This document shows, in pieces, positions 48,952-63,754 of a stretch of 64,000 nucleotides of DNA. This DNA is from Schizochytrium sp. TIO01 (Eukaryota; Protista; Bigyra: Labyrinthulomycetes). How positions within the stretch are numbered: the first letter of the stretch is position 1; the number at the start of each line of letters is the position of its first letter. The position numbers were made by a program, and so were the translations under genes. The DNA is taken from positions 124,001 through 188,000 of the forward strand of contig SMSO01000009.1 of assembly GCA_004764695.1 (NCBI GenBank), written 5' to 3'. The notes under the pieces are model-generated. The model was not told the origin of the DNA. It saw nothing but the letters and a program-made list of their open reading frames with translations, and did not search any database.

Positions 48952-51900
48952 ATGCCGCAGGCACGCAGAATTGAGGAAATCAAAGGAGATACAACGGAGA
49001 TATAGTAAGTGCAGGATGGAGAAAGGAGGAGACAGAAGAAGGAGGCATCGCGTCGTCGATGTGTTGTAGTAGTCAGCTTTGTAGAAGAAGAATAGTTCTG
49101 TACTAGTAGTGGCACTAATGAAGAAGTTGGAAATGGCATATACTTACTCTCACTTGTTCACAAACAAACAAACAAGCACAGTCTTGGTTGGGAAAGAATT
49201 GGTCATGAGGCCGCAAAGGCAATCGCAAAGGTACTCGAGGGATGCAAGAACCTTCAAACTTTACAGTACGTTTGTGGAATCATCCACGAGGGAAAGCTAT
49301 CGTAATAGTCAGGACCAAGCTTTTTCTTTCTTTCTTTTTAGTGCTTGGTGTTTGTAGTACTGCTGGTACACTACCTAAGTAGTTTACGTAGTTGGGTACG
49401 CAAAGAAAGGCAAAGAAGTCTTTTCTTTTTTACAAAGAGAAGAAGGAAATCTATATAATTTGATAGGCAGCAGCAGCAGCAGAAGAAGAAGAGCTGATTG
49501 CTTTTTATTGTGAGGAAAAACAAAACAAAACAGGATCAACTGACTGGACCTGTCTTTCCTGACAACGAATGAACAAAACAAACTTATTCATTTATACTCA
49601 CAGTCTTCAGGGCAACAACATTGGCTCGGAGGGCGCAAAGGCCGTCGCAAAGGCACTCGAGGGATGCAAGAACCTTCAAACTTTAGAGTACGTTTGTGGA
49701 ATCATCCACGAGGGAAAGCTATCGTAATAGTCAGGACCAAGCTTTTTCTTTCTTTCTTTTTAGTGCTTGGTGTTTGTAGTACTGCTGGTACACTACCTAA
49801 GTAGTTTACGTAGTTGGGTACGCAAAGAAAGGCAAAGAAGTCTTTTCTTTTTTACAAAGAGAAGAAGGAAATCTATATAATTTGATACGCAGCAGCAGCA
49901 GCAGCAGAAGAAGAAGAGGTGATTGCTTTTTATTGTGAGGAAAAACAAAACAAAACAGGATCAACTGACTGGACCTGTCTTTCCTGACAACGAATGAACA
50001 AAACAAACTTATTCATTTATACTCACAGTCTTCGTAGCAACAACATTGGCGATGAGGGCGCAAAGGCCGTCGCAAAGGCACTCGAGGGATGCAAGAACCT
50101 TCAACTTTACAGTACGTTTGTGGAATCATCCACGAGGGAAAGCTATCGTAATAGTCAGGACCAAGCTTTTTCTTTCTTTCTTTTTAGTGCTTGGTGTTTG
50201 TAGTACTGCTGGTACACTACCTAAGTAGTTTACGTAGTTGGGTACGCAAAGAAAGGCAAAGAAGTCTTTTCTTTTTTACAAAGAGAAGAAGGAAATCTAT
50301 ATAATTTGATAGGCAGCAGCAGCAGAAGAAGAAGAGGTGATTGCTTTTTATTGTGAGGAAAAACAAAACAAAACAGGATCAACTGACTGGACCTGTCTTT
50401 CCTGACAACGAATGAACAAAACAAACTTATTCATTTATACTCACAGTCTTTCTACCAACAACATTGGCGATGAGGGCGCAAAGGCCGTCGCAAAGGCACT
50501 CGAGGGATGCAAGAACCTTCAAACTTTAGAGTACGTTTGTGGAATCATCCACGAGGGAAAGCTATCGTAATAGTCAGGACCAAGCTTTTTCTTTCTTTCT
50601 TTTTAGTGCTTGGTGTTTGTAGTACTGCTGGTACACTACCTAAGTAGTTTACGTAGTTGGGTACGCAAAGAAAGGCAAAGAAGTCTTTTCTTTTTTACAA
50701 AGAGAAGAAGGAAATCTATATAATTTGATAGGCAGCAGCAGCAGCAGAAGAAGAAGAGGTGATTGCTTTTTATTGTGCGGAAAAACAAAACAAAACAGGA
50801 TCAACTGACTGGACCTGTCTTTCCTGACAACGAATGAACAAAACAAACTTATTCATTTATACTCACAGTCTTCAGTACAACAACATTGGCTCGGAGGGCG
50901 CAAAGGCCGTCGCAAAGGCACTCGAGGGATGCAAGAACCTGACTTATCTGAAGTACGTTTGTGGAATCATCCACGAGGGAAAGCTATCGTAATAGTCAGG
51001 ACCAAGCTTTTTCTTTCTTTCTTTTAGTGCTTGGTGTTTGTAGTACTGCTGGTACACTACCTAAGTAGTTTACGTAGTTGGGTACGCAAAGAAAGGCAAA
51101 GAAGTCTTTTCTTTTTTACAAAGAGAAGAAGGAAATCTATATAATTTGATACGCAGCAGCAGCAGCAGCAGCAGAAGAAGAGGTGATTGCTTTTTATTGT
51201 GAGGAAAAACAAAACAAAACAGGATCAACTGACTGGACCTGTCTTTCCTGACAACGAATGAACAAAACAAACTTATTCATTTATACTCACAGTCTTAGGG
51301 AGAACAACATTGGCTCGGAGGGCGCAAAGGCCGTCGCAAAGGCACTCGAGGGATGCAAGAACCTGACTTATCTGAAGTACGTTTGTGGAATCATCCACGA
51401 GGGAAAGCTATCGTAATAGTCAGGACCAAGCTTTTTCTTTCTTTCTTTTTAGTGGTTGGTGTTTGTAGTACTGCTGGTACACTACCTAAGTAGTTTACGT
51501 AGTTGGGTACGCAAAGAAAGGCAAAGAAGACTTTTTTTTTTACAAAGAGAAGAAGGAAATCTATATAATTTGATACGCAGCAGCAGCAGCAGCAGAAGAA
51601 GAAGAGCTGATTGCTTTTTATTGTGAGGAAAAACAAAACAAAACAGGATCAACTGACTGGACCTGTCTTTCCTGACAACGAATGAACAAAACAAACTTAT
51701 TCATGTATACTCACAGTCTTGGTAGCAACAACATTGGCGATGAGGGCGCAAAGGCCGTCGCAAAGGCACTCGAGGGATGCAAGAACCTTCAAGAATTGTA
51801 GTACGTTTGTGGAATCATCCACGAGGGAAAGCTATCGTAATAGTCAGGACCAAGCTTTTTCTTTCTTTCTTTTTAGTGGTTGGTGTTTGTAGTACTGCTG

Positions 51901-54900
51901 GTACACTACCTAAGTAGTTTACGTAGTTGGGTACGCAAAGAAAGGCAAAGAAGTCTTTTTTTTTTACAAAGAGAAGAAGGAGATCTATATAATTTGATAG
52001 GCAGCAGCAGCAGCAGCAGAAGAAGAAGAAGAGGTGATTGCTTTTTATTGTGAGGAAGAACAAAACAAAACAGGATCAACTGACTGGACCTGTCTTTCCT
52101 GACAACAACGAATGAACAAAACAAACTTATTCATTTATACTCACAGTCTTTACAACAACAACATTGGCGATGAGGGCGCAAAGGCCGTCGCAAAGTCTCT
52201 GCACAAAGCATGTCCTTCTGTTCAAATCTAGTAAGTTCCGTTCCCTCTGCTGCTATTCCCAGCTTGCGCAGAGCCTTGCCTTCGCTGGTTCTCTCCATCT
52301 CTCCATATGGACTTCCGAGGCCGTCTTTAGATGCGCTCATCGTTTTTCTAACAAGCGCTTTTACTGTCTTTCTTTCGTTCATTCGTTTACAAAACGCCGC
52401 AGTTTCTATGGTTGGAGTTCTTTGACCCCTAAAGAATTGTTCGAAAGGGTGTGTTCTCCTGGAGAAGATATCGCCGATTCCTCGTCAGAGACCGACTCCA
52501 TAGAGTCAGCAGAAAACGAGCCTTCTGCAGAGCCCAAGAACGAGCAAGACGGCATTGATGGCGCCGGGCTTGCTACTTTGGATGGATCTGGGTAAGTTCA
52601 TTCGGTTAATCTTTGTTTGGGATCGTGTAATCAGTCATTCCACGAATTGAGTTATTGAGATAGAGGGTATCCTAACTTTTACTTTTGCTTCTGCTTTTGT
52701 TGCTGCTTCAACATCATTTTGCTCGTTTGCTTACGTCTTCTTGTTCGTCTCAGAGAACGGGCGGATGGAGCGAGCGTGAGTTTCGCTGATGTGGTGCAGC
52801 TTGCCAAGAAAGTCTCGGACTTGCGCGCGGACCGAGGTGGGGTCAGAGGAAACTCCCTGCAAACTGGGATTGCCTTGCTTGAGGAGTTCGTAGGATCGGC
52901 GATCCAGGGCTACTTTGGCCAAGTGAAGTTGCGACAGGTTTTCGCTGACATCAAGAACTCCAAAGAGAGTCTTGACGTGCTACAAGGCCAGATTCGTGCA
53001 AGCTCTGCTGATGGCTTGCCCAGCCTCATCGAAAAGCGGAACACCGAACGGAGGCACCTGCATTCACTTTTGCAGGTTGTGTACCCATGGGTTCGCGCCA
53101 ACCTTTGTGAAAGTGGCGAGAGTGCAGTGCGAGAATTCAAAGTGAGAGTTGAAAGATTGGTAAGCGATCTAAAGATCAACCTTGCTCCAGTCGATGAAGA
53201 GACCATCACAGATGACTTCAAACACTGTCAAGAACTCGTTATTCAGGCTGTCCAATGCGTGGAAGGGTACAAGAGGAGTGGAGAAGGCCAACACAACAAC
53301 ATTGGTGAACGAAGCCAACAAGCTGTAAAGCGCGTCATCTCTCGATTGTCTGAGCTAGAACTTGGTGATGGATTATGGGTTGCTCTGAGAACACCTGAGC
53401 AGGCCATGAAGCTAGAACCGGAGTTGTCTGAACTTGAGAGTGCTCTCAAGCAAGAGATCGAAGTTCTACAAGGAGATACACTTCGTACCCAATTGTGGGA
53501 GATACTTTGCGCGATAAGTTCAACATTCGCTCGATTTGAAGGATACACTGAATGTGCTGCATTGAATGACACGAGCAAGTGCACACCAGAAAAGCTCTCT
53601 GAGCTGTATGACTATGCAGCACTGGGTTTGAAAGAACCTTCTGTCTCAGATGTTGAAGAATTATACCAGAAACTTGACAAGTCGAGGATAGCCACAGAAA
53701 TTTTGAAGAGAGCCAAAGAAGAACTCGAAATACAGGACATGGATGAGGAAGATCAAGCATATTTTAGAAATCGGATCAAGAAACAAGAGCTCATTCTCTC
53801 TCAAGGCAACCCTATCGACCTTAGCAAAGCTTTTCGTCATAAGCTTGCTGAGACTCTGCAATACGCGCAGGAACATTATCCAGAGTTGCTGCAAGATAGA
53901 GCCTGGCTGGAAAGGCTTCACGTAAGTGCAGAGGGTGTTTTTGAAGTAGCATGTTCTGACCTTTGGTTAACGAATGTCACAGTTACGGACTTCAAACCTG
54001 TCGGCGAGCCCCTTGCTTCCAGAGGTGGCAAGAGAGTACAAAAGGTTCTTGACAACTTTGGTAAAACTATGGTTCTCAAAGAGTTTCAGCTTGGGCATCC
54101 AAGTCAATCCAAAACCTTCTACAGACAAGTTGCCAATCTGGGCAAAGTGGTGTCTCAGCACGTGATACGTATCACTGGTGCTTTTGTGGTCATGACGCAT
54201 GGAGTACCGCGCGGCTGTATCGTCATGCCTTTCTACAAGCAAGGTGACCTTGCCAAGTGGATTGAGAGTCATCCTAACGAAGGCAAAGCAGCACGTGACC
54301 GACTTGCTGTTGGCCTGCTTATCGGCGTGGCGGATTTACATACCCACGGCATTGTGCATTGTGACATCAAACCAGAAAACATTTTCCTCACAAGCAACGG
54401 GACACCATTGATCGGCGACTTTGACGGCATCAAGAATGCAGACTACACTGCAACTTACACATCACTTCAGGCAACGCCACGGTACGTTGCCCCCGAGTTG
54501 CAGAATGGGCCTGTAGATAGGTTTGAAACAGCGATGGACATGTACTCTGTGGGCATCAGCTTAAAGGAGCTGTATCCTACTGAGCGAACCGCTGCCATGC
54601 AGACACTTATCGATGCTCTTACAGCAACAGACCCTGGCCAGCGTCCAACCGCTCGCCAAGCACTCCAACATGAAGCTTTTGGAGCTCCTAAGATCCCTGT
54701 CAAGATGTGCCTAGTATGCATGGAGGAGCATCTGCTCTCCGAGGGCACGAGCTGCGAGGAGGGAGACTTCCTTTGCAGAGACTGTATCGAATCTTCTGTA
54801 GAAGCGGCGGCACGGCCACTTGCTAACGTAAGAGTGGATGCTGATGGAACAATGGCATGCATGAAACCTGAATGTAGTGGAAGGATATCAGGTCAAGAAA

Positions 54901-55442
54901 TCACCCGTCTTGCACCAACTGCTTTGAATCACCTATTGTTGATTGCGAAGATGAAGGCAGAAAATGAAGCAGCAGTTTGGGCGGAGAAGGAGATCCAAAG
55001 GCGCATAGCACCAGTTTTACGTGCTGATGAACAGAATCGCGACGCACGGCTTCATTTACTTCATATTCAAGAGAAGATCTTGAGCACATGTTGTCCGAAC
55101 TGTAAGGCATATGTACACGATTTTGACGGTTGCTGTGCTGTAGAGTGTGGTAATGAGACTTGTGGTCATCACTTCTGCGCTTGGTGTCTTGGCTATAGTT
55201 CTCAGGATGCAGATGCTTGTCATGCTCATGTGAGAACCTGTTCAAGAAGACTTGGGCAAGATCCATTTTTTGCTGATTCTTTTGAGCAGGTTCGTGAGGC
55301 GTGGCAGTTGCTCCGCGCAGAACGTCTGCGTGAGTACTGGAATGCAAAAATTCAGGATGGAAATCTTCGACTCGTTCTAAAAGAGTTATTGTCGCCTTTG
55401 CTAACACCAGATATTGTTGGCGCAAACTTCAGATTGGAATAA
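48952..55442 (+). CDS. Spliced LRR - acidic linker - helical region - Ser/Thr kinase - RBR-like RING protein (gene C, ~1200 aa)
   Basis: Exons, all phase 2: 48952-49004 (MPQARRIEEIKGDTTEI); LRR exons 49182-49265, 49604-49687, 50029-50111 (83 nt), 50447-50530, 50869-50952, 51293-51376, 51717-51800, 52147-52230; linker 52403-52591; terminal 52754-55442. Kinase motifs MVLKEF, HCDIKPEN, GDFD, YVAPE, DMYSVG. Zinc fingers CLVC..C..FLCRDC..CMKPEC and CPNC..DGCCAVEC..CGHHFCAWC. Confidence 0.9.
49182..52195 (+). repeat. Tandem exon+intron cassette array of gene C (~418-430 bp period, 7 near-identical introns)
   Basis: Introns gtacgtttgtggaatcatccacgagg...tatactcacag differ mainly in a (GCA)n(GAA)n microsatellite and a few single-base changes or short indels. 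Confidence 0.96.
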
Positions 55443-58400
55443 ACTAATCGAATTTTTAATGATTATCTTTTTCGTAAGCGCTGTTGACTAAAAGGCAAGA
55501 AAGTAACTGCTCTCCTCCAGACAGCACCGACGTCTGCCAACAGGATCAACATTTATAATGTGTATTCATGCAAGGTTCTTCGTGGGGGAAAATACTAAAA
55601 CTTAACATAAATTAAACATAAATCAGAACAAAGTAATAACTCGTTAACATTTGACTGATGATATATATGCTTTCTTAACTTTATTTTTCCAGTTTGAGGA
55701 GCATATTTACTTTATTATTAGATACTAATTCTTACTTTGTTTTACTCTCTCCGTTCCTTCGATAATTCATTCAGCAACACCGCAAGGTATCAGAAGCTCT
55801 AGGTTTAAGCCAAATCGTCGCAAAACAAACTCAAAAATACTTTTTTGATTCATCTCTCCTTTGGCAGTTCTCAATAGTTCTCATTTCGCAAAGCAACTTT
55901 TTATTTATTTGTTCATCAAAGCCAAAATGCAGTTCTTCTAACGGCACTGAAACCCTTAATGTGACGATTTCCTCTCGGTTGCGAGGTGCTGGGCTTTTCC
56001 AATTTGAATAAGAACGCCATCAAAGGCAGGAGCAAAAGTAGTATTACAGACGCAACCCTTTCTCCGAACCTATGACGACCTGAGTAATAGGGAGATTGAT
56101 TCTTTCTTGGTAACTATTTACTATTTCACAATAAGTCAATCGTAAAGATCAGACTCTGAACACAAGCCTTTGCACTCCAGACAACTTTTGAAAGCTAGAA
56201 GGAAACCAACAGTTATTTAATCCTCGAAACTCTTTGATCTTGTTATGCCATGTATCCAGATTTACTATTCGAAGCATGGACTCTTCTCAAGAAAACCATT
56301 TAAATTCCATATCTTAAACTCTCAGAACAAAGTTGACTCAACGAACCTCCAAAGGCAAAACATTGCCTTCCTGATTACATCTTTAAGTTGTTCTTCAAAT
56401 TTTTATTGAAGAGAGAATTGCAATGACGCACAGAGTGATAGATGAATCAGTTTACTCCACCAATCTGAGATTGCGAGAGAATGACAGAATTGTGGATACC
56501 AGAGAAGCTACAAAGTAAATGCACAATCGCTATTAAAAGATGTGCTCTAAGCAGCCAGAGGTTACATAGGAAGATGGCGGCATCTTTTTATGCTTCGGCG
56601 TACACAGTTCGCGATTGAAAACCTTGGAGATGAACATTCAGCACCAAAACTTCAAGAGTTTTGTGCATTCAAGGATTTACTGTCCTAGTAAATGATCCGC
56701 TGCTGCTGCGTAAAAATCTTTAACAGGTGGAACAGTTCATACCCTGAGTAGGAGACTAAGGCTGTTAAAACTCAGAGCTAAAGGGGTGAGGCTAGCTCGT
56801 TTGTTCAACATAATTCTTTGGTTGTATATTTCATATTCACTTATGACTTTCCTTGGTCTCACTCCTTCGTATTTGGTAGTCATATTCTTATAAGTCCTAG
56901 ACTACGAGGACTTTTAATAGTGTGACAATGACTCTTCTCCACAAAACTCTTTGCTTGGTAATCTCAGCACAGAGCTTTTAAATTTTGCTGCGCCCCACGA
57001 ACTTCATATTTTAATCTGGCTACTTGACTTAATAGAATCCCACATGATAAGCTTTATCAGTGTTCCAAGACATATTCTACAATGATGAATTTGAACATTA
57101 CTACATTATGATTCATCCGTTGAAAGAAACTATTGGCTTTACATACTAATGCCTTATCGAAGTTTTACAGCTATGTGTCGGACGGATCATCTCAAGGTGC
57201 CGAACACAAGTCCTGCTGAGATCTCCAATCGAAGGAACTAGTGGACAAGACATTGCTAGAGTTCTTGGTGTCCCTTTGTAAAATCCAATAGTAATAAGGT
57301 TTACATTAGAACAAGAATAGGCAGCCAGACTCATGTGGCTGCTGAAGCCAAGAACTAGAAGTGTGAATACACATTACCGACACCCAAGCTTGGTTTAGCT
57401 TGGATCGATGGTTGGCGAAAGTTGGATAACCTAACCCCATCGATTATCTCTAACCACATTCAAGAATGTCTTAGTCTCCCTAATTACTACATGAATCTAT
57501 CTGTCCTGGAACTCATTCCTCAGGACAGCAGTTCGCTAACTCTTAAATCAACCTTCTTATAGCCTTCATCAAGCTTCCTACCTTCATCTTTACAATCAAC
57601 CTCACGCTAATCAGCATCAGCTTTCAGCAAATCCAAAGCCCATAGACTTTGACAATGGGCCTTGTCAGCAGTTCCTGAATATTAATTCTAACTTTTCTTT
57701 TCCTACGCTATCTCTTGGTGATCGCCTCATGCTAACTTGCAATACACCTCTAAGAGGAGAACACATGTACTGAAGCTACATTTGCTGATAGTGTTAATGA
57801 AAGTGTTAAGCGGTTTGCATCTCCCATGAGATCTCTGTGATGGTGTGGTGTTGTGCGCCCACTGAGATTGTGTTGTTCTTCATACATATATTAAGGTTGT
57901 TGTTCGAGTGAGTTTTAAAGCAGCTGAGACACATGTGAGTACACAGCCAAACAGAATGCGCGCAACCGTGCTTGGGTAGTCCCTTCATAAGTTTTTATAC
58001 GCACTTCTCATCATATTCAACTTTGCAACACTAGATATGATAACTAGGTGGTTAACCATTAGGAATAGTAGCACCCAGTAACTTTCTTTCTTGTATCCAG
58101 CATGGGAAATTAGCTTGTTGTGGTTTTCCAGGAGATACACAGCTGCTTGATTGAATCATGAACGTAGAGTGTTTCTTGCATCTGTGAAAGAAAGAATGAT
58201 TAGTAGGAGAGAGTCGAACTATATCGGCGAGATTCGGACACGCAAAGGAAACCATTTAAGTGAACAAGTGTCACCTTTCCTTCTAGCACAGAACTGAAAC
58301 ACCACAACAAAAAACAGTGTAAAAATTTTTCTTTTTTTCTAAATGTATTTATTTGAAACTATGCAAACTAGACTAAAGCAACTACTTATAACCATTAACC

Positions 58401-63680: not shown

Positions 63681-63754
63681 GTCTCCGTGGCCAAGTTGGA
63701 TAAGGTGCCTGACTACGAATCAGGAGATCGTGGGTTCAAGTCCCGCCGGAGATT
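63681..63754 (+). tRNA. tRNA-Arg(ACG)
   Basis: Acceptor GTCTCCG/CGGAGAT, D arm TGGCCAAGTTGGATAAGG, anticodon arm CCTGA-CT-ACG-AA-TCAGG, T loop GGTTCAAGTCCC, T-run ~18 nt downstream. Confidence 0.95.

Follow-up and report, generated by a model that had tools for sequence, protein, structure and literature searches.

A transcribed gene family joining a variable leucine-rich-repeat array to a protein kinase and a predicted RBR-like ubiquitin ligase, with a likely role in cytosolic recognition

The 64,000-nucleotide stretch of DNA analyzed here (the window) carries, at positions 48952-55442 of its plus strand, an 11-exon member of an expressed gene family in which an array of leucine-rich repeats (LRRs) with a variable face is joined to a protein kinase and a ligase module. 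We consider it likely that the products act as cytosolic recognition receptors. The gene consists of a start exon, eight exons of one LRR each, an acidic linker exon, and an exon of 895 amino acids (aa). The encoded protein, soluble and ~1,200 residues long, runs as one chain from a short N terminus through the LRRs and the acidic linker to an all-alpha region, the kinase, and the ligase module. A single soluble chain of variable LRRs, kinase, and RBR-like (RING-between-RING) module had been proposed in an initial annotation of this DNA, and splice joints, a full-length paralogue open reading frame (ORF), Pfam matches, structure comparison, and 136 near-full-length relatives all agree with it. 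The architecture, with its helical region, non-RD/DFD kinase, and RBR-like ligase without an IBR domain, is new to the literature searched, in which nothing relevant to it was found. The Hsp90 of this genome is 100% identical to a protein of MMETSP Aurantiochytrium (taxon 87120) and 95% identical to that of Hondaea fermentalgiana; to judge by this sequence, the genome is therefore that of Aurantiochytrium limacinum, a thraustochytrid stramenopile, or of a very close relative.

The 907-aa ORF at 52719-55442 represents only the last exon (52754-55442) of this larger gene, as the initial annotation had held. The same annotation had joined that exon to a preceding LRR array through the phase-compatible splice pairs 52230|52403 and 52591|52754 and had seen neither a signal peptide nor a transmembrane segment. 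GT..AG joints in transcript contigs agree with both pairs, eight LRR exons lie within a 424-bp tandem repeat ahead of the kinase exon, exon 1 is hydrophilic, and no hydrophobic stretch is present (maximum 19-residue Kyte-Doolittle mean, 1.34). The gene and its array are laid out as follows (TRF, Tandem Repeats Finder; RI, ribonuclease inhibitor).

48952..49004, plus strand: exon 1; ATG, 17 codons plus 2 bases, GTAAGT donor; hydrophilic, without a signal peptide
49182..49265, plus strand: LRR exon 1; 84 nt, array-initial type (LGWERIGHEAAK...)
49198..52195, plus strand: 424-bp tandem repeat; TRF, 7.1 copies, 96% identity; unit composed of an 84-nt LRR exon and an intron of ~340 nt
49604..49687, plus strand: LRR exon 2; 84 nt, 28-residue repeat of the RI/NLR type; LRR_6 E 1e-3
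50029..50111, plus strand: LRR exon 3; 83 nt, lacking one base within an A run; inclusion shifts the frame
50447..50530, plus strand: LRR exon 4; 84 nt
50869..50952, plus strand: LRR exon 5; 84 nt
51293..51376, plus strand: LRR exon 6; 84 nt
51717..51800, plus strand: LRR exon 7; 84 nt, donor GTACGT after TTGTA
52147..52230, plus strand: LRR exon 8; terminal type (...AKSLHKACPSVQI), in the same position in 20/20 paralogues examined
52403..52591, plus strand: linker exon; 189 nt, acidic, Ser-rich, without a Pfam match
52754..55442, plus strand: last exon; 895 codons and stop

Every intron splits a codon after its second base (two bases plus one), and because all introns share this phase, any LRR exon can follow any other. 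The 84-nt LRR segments are bounded by a CAG acceptor and a GTACGT donor, and splice sites, phase, and open frames are conserved across ~180 repeat units. The ATG, reading frame, and donor of exon 1 recur in 12 of the 14 paralogues examined, 216-233 nt upstream of the first LRR exon, and the paralogue arrays likewise open with a distinct LRR exon of the LGGH/LCGK type. At the other end, all 20 paralogues examined have the terminal LRR exon (...AKSLHKACPSVxI) ~520 bp ahead of the large exon, with 2 to at least 15 cassette exons before it.

Contigs of four public sequencing runs were placed on positions 52100-55500. The GT..AG joint 52230->52403 occurs in transcript contigs of two runs (X6 and X7) and the joint 52590/1->52753/4 in those of three (X1, X2, and X7). 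In most intron bins the contig depth is about 5- to 60-fold under that of the adjacent exon bins, and loose contig ends at 52157 join an upstream LRR exon straight to the next one. One contig of run X1 (52227->52753) passes in frame from the last LRR exon into the large exon with the 189-nt linker exon left out, which may reflect alternative splicing or a paralogue without the linker. Independently, in the MMETSP transcriptome of the same species (taxon 87120), a complete ORF of 1240 aa (P0289/P0290) encodes ~11 LRR_6 repeats (E 5e-34 against Pfam LRR_6 for P0289), the helical region, the kinase, and both zinc fingers of the ligase module; a partial transcript of the cassette type (P0140) is present as well. 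The gene family is thus transcribed and multi-exon, with LRR and kinase exons in one transcript. The initial annotation had named RNA sequencing across the LRR-to-kinase junctions as the check on its reading and separate LRR and kinase genes as one case that would overturn it; the splice joints and the full-length paralogue transcript contradict that case.

Each 84-nt segment encodes one 28-residue repeat of the RI/NLR type (LxxNNIGxEGAKAVAKALEGCKNLxxL), and the array consensus follows the pattern LxxLxLxxNxIgxxGaxxLaxaLxxxxx; single LRR exons match Pfam LRR_6 with E-values of 4e-4 to 2e-3, below the cut-off for a lone repeat. Variation is distributed very unevenly over the array of this window, with a mean of 0.76 mismatches per exon column versus 0.10 per intron column. 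Differences between repeats fall almost exclusively on the solvent-exposed x positions of LxxLxLxxN, whose residues form the concave ligand-binding face of LRR proteins. In the close subfamily, with 86 intact cassette exons compared, positions 2 and 3 have an entropy above 3 bits, position 26 one of 2.4, and positions 25 and 8 one of 1.3, and 12 different residues are found at the split codon. The framework codons are identical even at synonymous sites, and the introns are near-identical between repeats.

The 64-Mb assembly contains the last exon at least 51 times, at 61-96% identity, and 44 of these copies are free of stop codons. Many copies lie near contig ends and beside dispersed, largely subtelomeric 18S-28S units, and there are clusters adjoining 18S genes (e.g., C34:2.83-3.00 Mb and C13:7.18-7.25 Mb). 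Among 12 close paralogues, the ratio of nonsynonymous to synonymous substitution rates (dN/dS) is 0.22 for both the kinase and the E3 ligase module, 0.40 for the helical region, and 0.30 for the last exon as a whole. The effector half is under purifying selection. A diversified sensor paired with an effector under constraint is what characterizes families of recognition receptors.

Several observations weigh against this interpretation. The run type is only a guess, although the removal of introns at canonical sites shows that the runs are RNA, and the data are contigs and not reads; because paralogues are 80-96% identical, the joints are not assignable to this copy, and what they prove is the structure of the family. 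Both enzymatic activities are predictions from sequence and models. The features that concern the helical region and the kinase are these (AF2, AlphaFold2; pLDDT, predicted local distance difference test).

52755..53993, plus strand: all-alpha region, ~413 residues; AF2 pLDDT 75.6, all helices; no fold assigned
53994..54674, plus strand: protein kinase domain; Pfam Pkinase (PF00069), E 4e-28, above the curated cut-off
54078-54080, plus strand: kinase residue K442
54363-54365, plus strand: D537 of HCD, followed by N542
54417-54425, plus strand: DFD (D555), followed by APE

Pfam returned nothing significant for the 422 residues before the kinase or for the linker exon, and a fold search of the helical region found generic helical bundles only (Z<9). 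The C-terminal half of the helical region (HYPELL...W motif) is conserved in distant relatives and is homologous to part of a WD40-fused distant relative, P0165 (hhalign probability, 96%). No Pfam match to a NACHT or NB-ARC P-loop NTPase was found before the kinase, and none to Roc or COR in the last exon or the linker exon, in keeping with the initial description of an architecture without NACHT, NB-ARC, or ROC. The kinase had been described as retaining the Lys, HCDIKPEN, and APE with DFD in place of DFG, all of which the sequence contains, and K442, D537, N542, D555, and APE are invariant in 14 sequences. Kinase activity is plausible. It is made uncertain by Gln458, which occupies the place of the alpha-C Glu in the best PDB relative, 9gmp_A (E 2.5e-16), by DFD for DFG, and by a degenerate glycine loop (GxGxxG), so that the full set of motifs linked to activity (alpha-C Glu, DFG Gly, and GxGxxG) is not present. 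The catalytic loop, moreover, is non-RD (HCD), and the departures are family-wide, with HCD in 29 of 45 relatives and DFD in 37 of 42. The domain may then be a pseudokinase, a nucleotide-binding or conformational switch between sensor and ligase that phosphorylates nothing. We take this possibility seriously but think it the less probable one, as the Lys, catalytic Asp, Asn, and metal-binding Asp are invariant in the same 14 sequences, dN/dS is 0.22, and non-RD kinases of immune receptors are often active.

A second point against concerns this copy. Its LRR exon 3, at 83 nt, breaks the reading frame, and the variant occurs only once in the genome. The short exon may be the mark of a pseudogene, a skipped exon, or a long-read error; this copy gives the full protein only if exon 3 is skipped, which keeps the frame, or if the loss of the base arose in the assembly. 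Frame-shifted LRR exons also occur in other arrays (8 of 15 in paralogue L016 and one each in L021 and L026), which fits a pseudogene within a functional family. We nevertheless regard such a state as rather unlikely for this copy, since its remaining exons, splice sites, and 895-codon exon are intact, the lost base falls within an A run, where long-read errors are typical, and the arrays of Ectocarpus carry similar inactivated exons within working genes (PMC3341825). In L016 (G000:C7:1065070-1075069), the 8 affected exons are 82, 83, or 85 nt long, with frameshifts or stops near variable codons and an intact kinase-ligase exon, and the indels seem to be clustered at the hypervariable codons.

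The ligase module occupies the C-terminal part of the last exon.

54708..54875, plus strand: RING1-type finger; C652, C655, C667, D671, C674, C677, C702, C707
54876..55091, plus strand: 72-residue helical linker where RBR ligases have an IBR; AF2 helices at 84-118 and 123-137 of the C-terminal model
55092..55241, plus strand: Rcat-like finger; C780, C783, C793, C798, C803, C808, C811, H825, C829
55131-55133, plus strand: candidate catalytic Cys C793, a non-ligand Cys in the Rcat-like finger
55242..55439, plus strand: C-terminal helical tail, conserved with the module

The initial annotation had seen here a RING1-like finger with Asp for His (CEEGDFLC), no obvious IBR, and a second finger in which DGCCAVEC matches the motif carrying the RBR catalytic Cys, and the sequence contains each of these features. 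The first finger has the RBR RING1 pattern, including the C-x4-C last pair, and its His position, Asp (D671) in this copy, is His in 129 of 136 relatives. Its best structural matches are RBR RING1 domains (VIA-align Z 7.2-5.5). By its sequence it is a cross-brace C3HC4 RING1 for which E2 binding is predicted. Between the fingers there is no IBR: the 72 residues are free of zinc-ligand pairs and have no Pfam IBR match, and among the 136 near-full-length relatives the linker measures 66-89 residues with mostly 0-6 Cys and His (7 in one). The second finger aligns with the RING2 of Ariadne-1 over 35 residues without a gap and with all seven Cys matched, at a weak E of 0.007, and the DGC of DGCCAVEC falls on the GGC of GGCNHMVC, which bears the catalytic Cys of Ariadne-1; the match to parkin RING2 is weak as well (E 0.022). 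The eight ligands of a linear Rcat are conserved in the 136 relatives and the free Cys in 134 of them. The AF2 model of the C-terminal module (pLDDT 86) returns RBR ligases as the top Foldseek matches, RNF216 (1.6e-3) and then ARIH2, RNF144A, parkin, HOIL-1L, and HHARI, and the nearest named ESM-atlas clusters are all of the RBR, IBR, or Rcat families.

The scores themselves count on the other side. Those of the Rcat-like finger against the PDB are weak (E 0.007-0.02), the RING of RNF4 does better in sum (E 8.6e-5, the best PDB score for the second finger, with the AZUL finger of E6AP at 0.0023), and the Foldseek E-values are also weak. For the C-terminal 255 residues Pfam has no significant match, its sole hits being IBR_2 (E 0.86) and zf-C3HC4_4 (E 2.9). 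With the IBR absent and the C-x2-C...C-x-H-x2-C-x2-C pattern readable as a RING, the module might consist of two ordinary RING-type fingers, either a plain RING E3 or a non-catalytic zinc scaffold, with no thioester and a superficial likeness to RBR ligases. We find this unlikely. The His of 'CGH' that a cross-brace RING needs varies among relatives (Cys in 48, Ala in 30, a gap in 14, and others), 134 of 136 retain a Cys for which a RING would have no use, the gapless alignment pairs all seven Cys with those of Ariadne-1, whole RBR ligases and RBR RING1 domains come up first in structure searches, and the language-model neighbors are RBR families. On present evidence, we describe the module as a predicted IBR-less RBR-like ligase (RING1, helical linker, Rcat-like finger, and helical tail), which is without one defining RBR feature. 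If it works via the conserved Cys, RBR-type catalysis can do without the IBR.

Compared with the RBR E3 ligases (parkin, HHARI/ARIH1, HOIP, HOIL-1, RNF144, and RNF216), the module shares the RING1 with its C-x4-C last pair, the flanking helices, and the Rcat spacing C-x2-C-x9-C-x4-C-x4-C-x4-C-x2-C...H...C with a conserved non-ligand Cys. It differs in having a helical linker of 66-89 residues for the IBR/BRcat, in leaving the Pfam RBR models unmatched, and in being fused to a kinase and repeat sensors. The pairing of a kinase with a putative autoinhibited Cys-dependent ligase recalls PINK1 and parkin, and the relative P0177 adds a parkin-like N-terminal ubiquitin-like domain; here, in contrast, kinase and ligase lie in one chain, and the kinase is not PINK1-like by sequence (best PDB match 9gmp, 'MAP kinase kinase-like'). 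The analogy with PINK1-parkin is functional speculation.

The kinase-ligase core is widespread, and public annotations of its members say only "protein kinase, putative". When the C-terminal module serves as the search profile, 2,245 cluster representatives match at E<=1e-3, of which 839 reach E<=1e-10. In the sampled relatives, the kinase and module follow LRR_6 repeats, ankyrin repeats plus LRRs, a WD40 propeller, a PQQ-like propeller, or a ubiquitin-like N terminus, and because relatives bear such different N termini, we conclude that the core is an effector unit that is conserved while the repeat sensors attached to it are interchangeable. The named relatives are proteins of Hondaea fermentalgiana ("protein kinase, putative"), Durusdinium trenchii, and Polykrikos; proteins of Pythium align with the module only in part, and the ESM-atlas clusters nearest to it are haptophyte. 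The initial annotation had suggested a search for the same architecture across stramenopiles; the core is found in thraustochytrids, in dinoflagellates, and partly in oomycetes. In P0177 (Logan, 1251 aa), an N-terminal ubiquitin-like domain is followed by a kinase and RING1-Rcat, so that a single chain unites the domains of parkin with a kinase.

An immune or recognition role is well motivated by these features, and the chain may tag recognized targets such as viral proteins. In the mechanism that we envisage, the variable LRR face would bind a variable ligand, either non-self (e.g., viral proteins) or a conspecific marker, and ligand binding would release an autoinhibited helical-kinase-ligase core. 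The kinase would then activate the ligase, or prime ubiquitin or the substrate, following the logic of PINK1 acting on parkin but within one chain. RING1 would hold the E2~ubiquitin, and Cys793 would take the ubiquitin from the E2 and hand it to the bound target or a signaling partner. The persistent mirusviruses of this host (PMC12606086) are an obvious candidate source of ligands; the paper that describes them does not mention this gene family. If the LRR face recognizes non-self, the family would offer a tractable protist immune-like repertoire in a culturable, transformable host with persistent giant-virus relatives.

Genome position raises a further doubt. The copy number of at least 51 is near the reported ~52 chromosome ends of the species, and the family expansion may simply follow subtelomere homogenization. 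Recognition might be neither antiviral nor antimicrobial and serve instead in allorecognition or as a mating type (as with fungal HET/NLR loci), or the genes might have a function at the ribosomal DNA (rDNA) or telomeres, with which the tight linkage of copies to rDNA and contig ends and the closeness of their number to the chromosome-end count would accord. These alternatives appear improbable to us in sum. A hypervariable LRR face with effectors of the innate-immunity type fits either kind of recognition, and a subtelomeric location is common for variable repertoires.

The setting of the array also bears on a published feature of this genome. Two 5S rRNA genes flank the locus.

47604..47722, plus strand: 5S rRNA gene upstream of the locus; Rfam, 94.8 bits
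59048..59166, plus strand: 5S rRNA gene downstream of the locus; Rfam, 96.5 bits

Group 5 of the LORE-TEARS has a unit of ~421 bp in several repeats between two consecutive 5S genes near rDNA, and it was published as non-coding spacer without database similarity, possibly for chromosome-end maintenance (10.1101/2023.06.15.545109; this preprint is Collier et al. 2023, and the published version, Curr Biol doi 10.1016/j.cub.2023.10.009, is cited in PMC12606086). The array in the window, 424 bp in 7.1 copies between the 5S genes at 47604 and 59048, shares the size of the unit and its place between consecutive 5S genes near rDNA, and it therefore fits this group, an equation that rests on the published description and not on sequence comparison and to that extent also counts against our reading. 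It differs from the published account in that the array consists of the exons and introns of a protein-coding gene. We conclude that LORE-TEARS group 5 is the coding exon-intron array of an expressed gene and not a spacer, so that at least one class of the "non-coding" LORE-TEARS at Aurantiochytrium chromosome ends becomes the exon array of an expressed gene family; no link of LORE-TEARS to coding sequence was found in the literature searched. The published interpretation (10.1101/2023.06.15.545109), by which the 424-bp array would be non-coding subtelomeric spacer for chromosome-end maintenance, the kinase ORF a separate gene, and the LRR-like codons incidental, has in its favor that the introns are as conserved as a satellite, but it is highly improbable given the joints that link the last LRR exon through the linker to the kinase exon and LRR exon to LRR exon, the splice sites, phase, and open frames conserved in ~180 units, the confinement of variation to ligand-face codons, the conserved start exon, and the paralogue with a full-length LRR-kinase transcript.

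Taking the coding array together with the wider family, we offer a broader proposal, tentatively and as one that is more likely wrong than right. Protists of the stramenopile-alveolate-rhizarian (SAR) group and haptophytes would have a cytosolic recognition system built on a helical-kinase-RING1-Rcat core, in which the kinase switches on a Cys-dependent ligase and the repeat sensors are swappable. Aurantiochytrium would keep its repertoire in the rDNA-linked subtelomeric LORE-TEARS, as same-phase cassettes reshuffled by recombination or exon skipping, and so hold a large and fast-changing repertoire, possibly directed against persistent mirusviruses.

The closest known organization is that of the LRR-ROCO and NB-ARC-TPR candidates of Ectocarpus, also a stramenopile, in which there is likewise one repeat per exon and exon lengths are divisible by three, which allows shuffling or skipping of cassettes (Zambounis et al. 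2012, PMC3341825; PMC11378527). Both systems have inactivated exons in their arrays, variable ligand-face residues, and a cytosolic multi-domain effector, and the family described here shows the whole set of traits of the Ectocarpus type, namely one repeat per exon, same-phase introns, variable array length, inactivated exons (reported for the ROCO arrays in PMC3341825), and a hypervariable ligand face. The Ectocarpus exons, however, are 72 nt long (24-residue plant-type LRRs), in contrast to 84 nt (28-residue RI/NLR-type LRRs) here, and they precede a ROC-COR or NB-ARC effector instead of a helical region, kinase, and RBR-like ligase; in the present family, moreover, the introns are near-identical and the arrays lie in rDNA-linked subtelomeric repeats. 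The LRR-kinases of Ectocarpus show no shuffling (PMC3341825). What is new here is thus the effector combination and the IBR-less RBR-like ligase on exon-cassette repeat receptors of a kind known from brown algae.

There are also likenesses to receptors of animals and plants. Vertebrate NLR genes carry RI-type LRRs with one repeat per exon, and plant pattern-recognition receptors have a non-RD kinase. The present family has the 28-residue RI-type LRRs and the one-repeat exons of animal NLRs and the non-RD kinase of plant LRR receptor kinases, but, unlike these, it has no NACHT or NB-ARC, P-loop, transmembrane segment, or signal peptide.

Elsewhere in the window, at 1-5309, a second set of tandem arrays has units of 370-397 bp with RI-type LRR coding segments after a CAG acceptor. 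These arrays lie upstream of an 18S gene, fit LORE-TEARS 'Group 0', and are probably the exon array of another gene; no large effector ORF for them was seen in 5000-8900. Two complete 18S-5.8S-28S units, at 8909-14427 (plus strand) and 36208-41723 (minus strand), are arranged tail to tail with their 3' ends facing. Each is followed by arrays of ~411-417-bp and ~371-bp units (15416-21675 and 30050-35187) that fit LORE-TEARS groups 1 and 2. The layout of the paired rDNA units resembles that of two subtelomere units fused by their telomere-proximal ends; a TTAGGG-type telomere repeat is absent from the window, including the interval between the two rDNA units. Between the two inverted subtelomere-like units sits a 1664-aa ORF (22058-27052, minus strand) with gag-pre-integrase, SH3-like, and RVT_2 domains, the polyprotein of a Ty1/copia-type retrotransposon. 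A tRNA gene is located at 63681-63754 (plus strand; Rfam, 60 bits).

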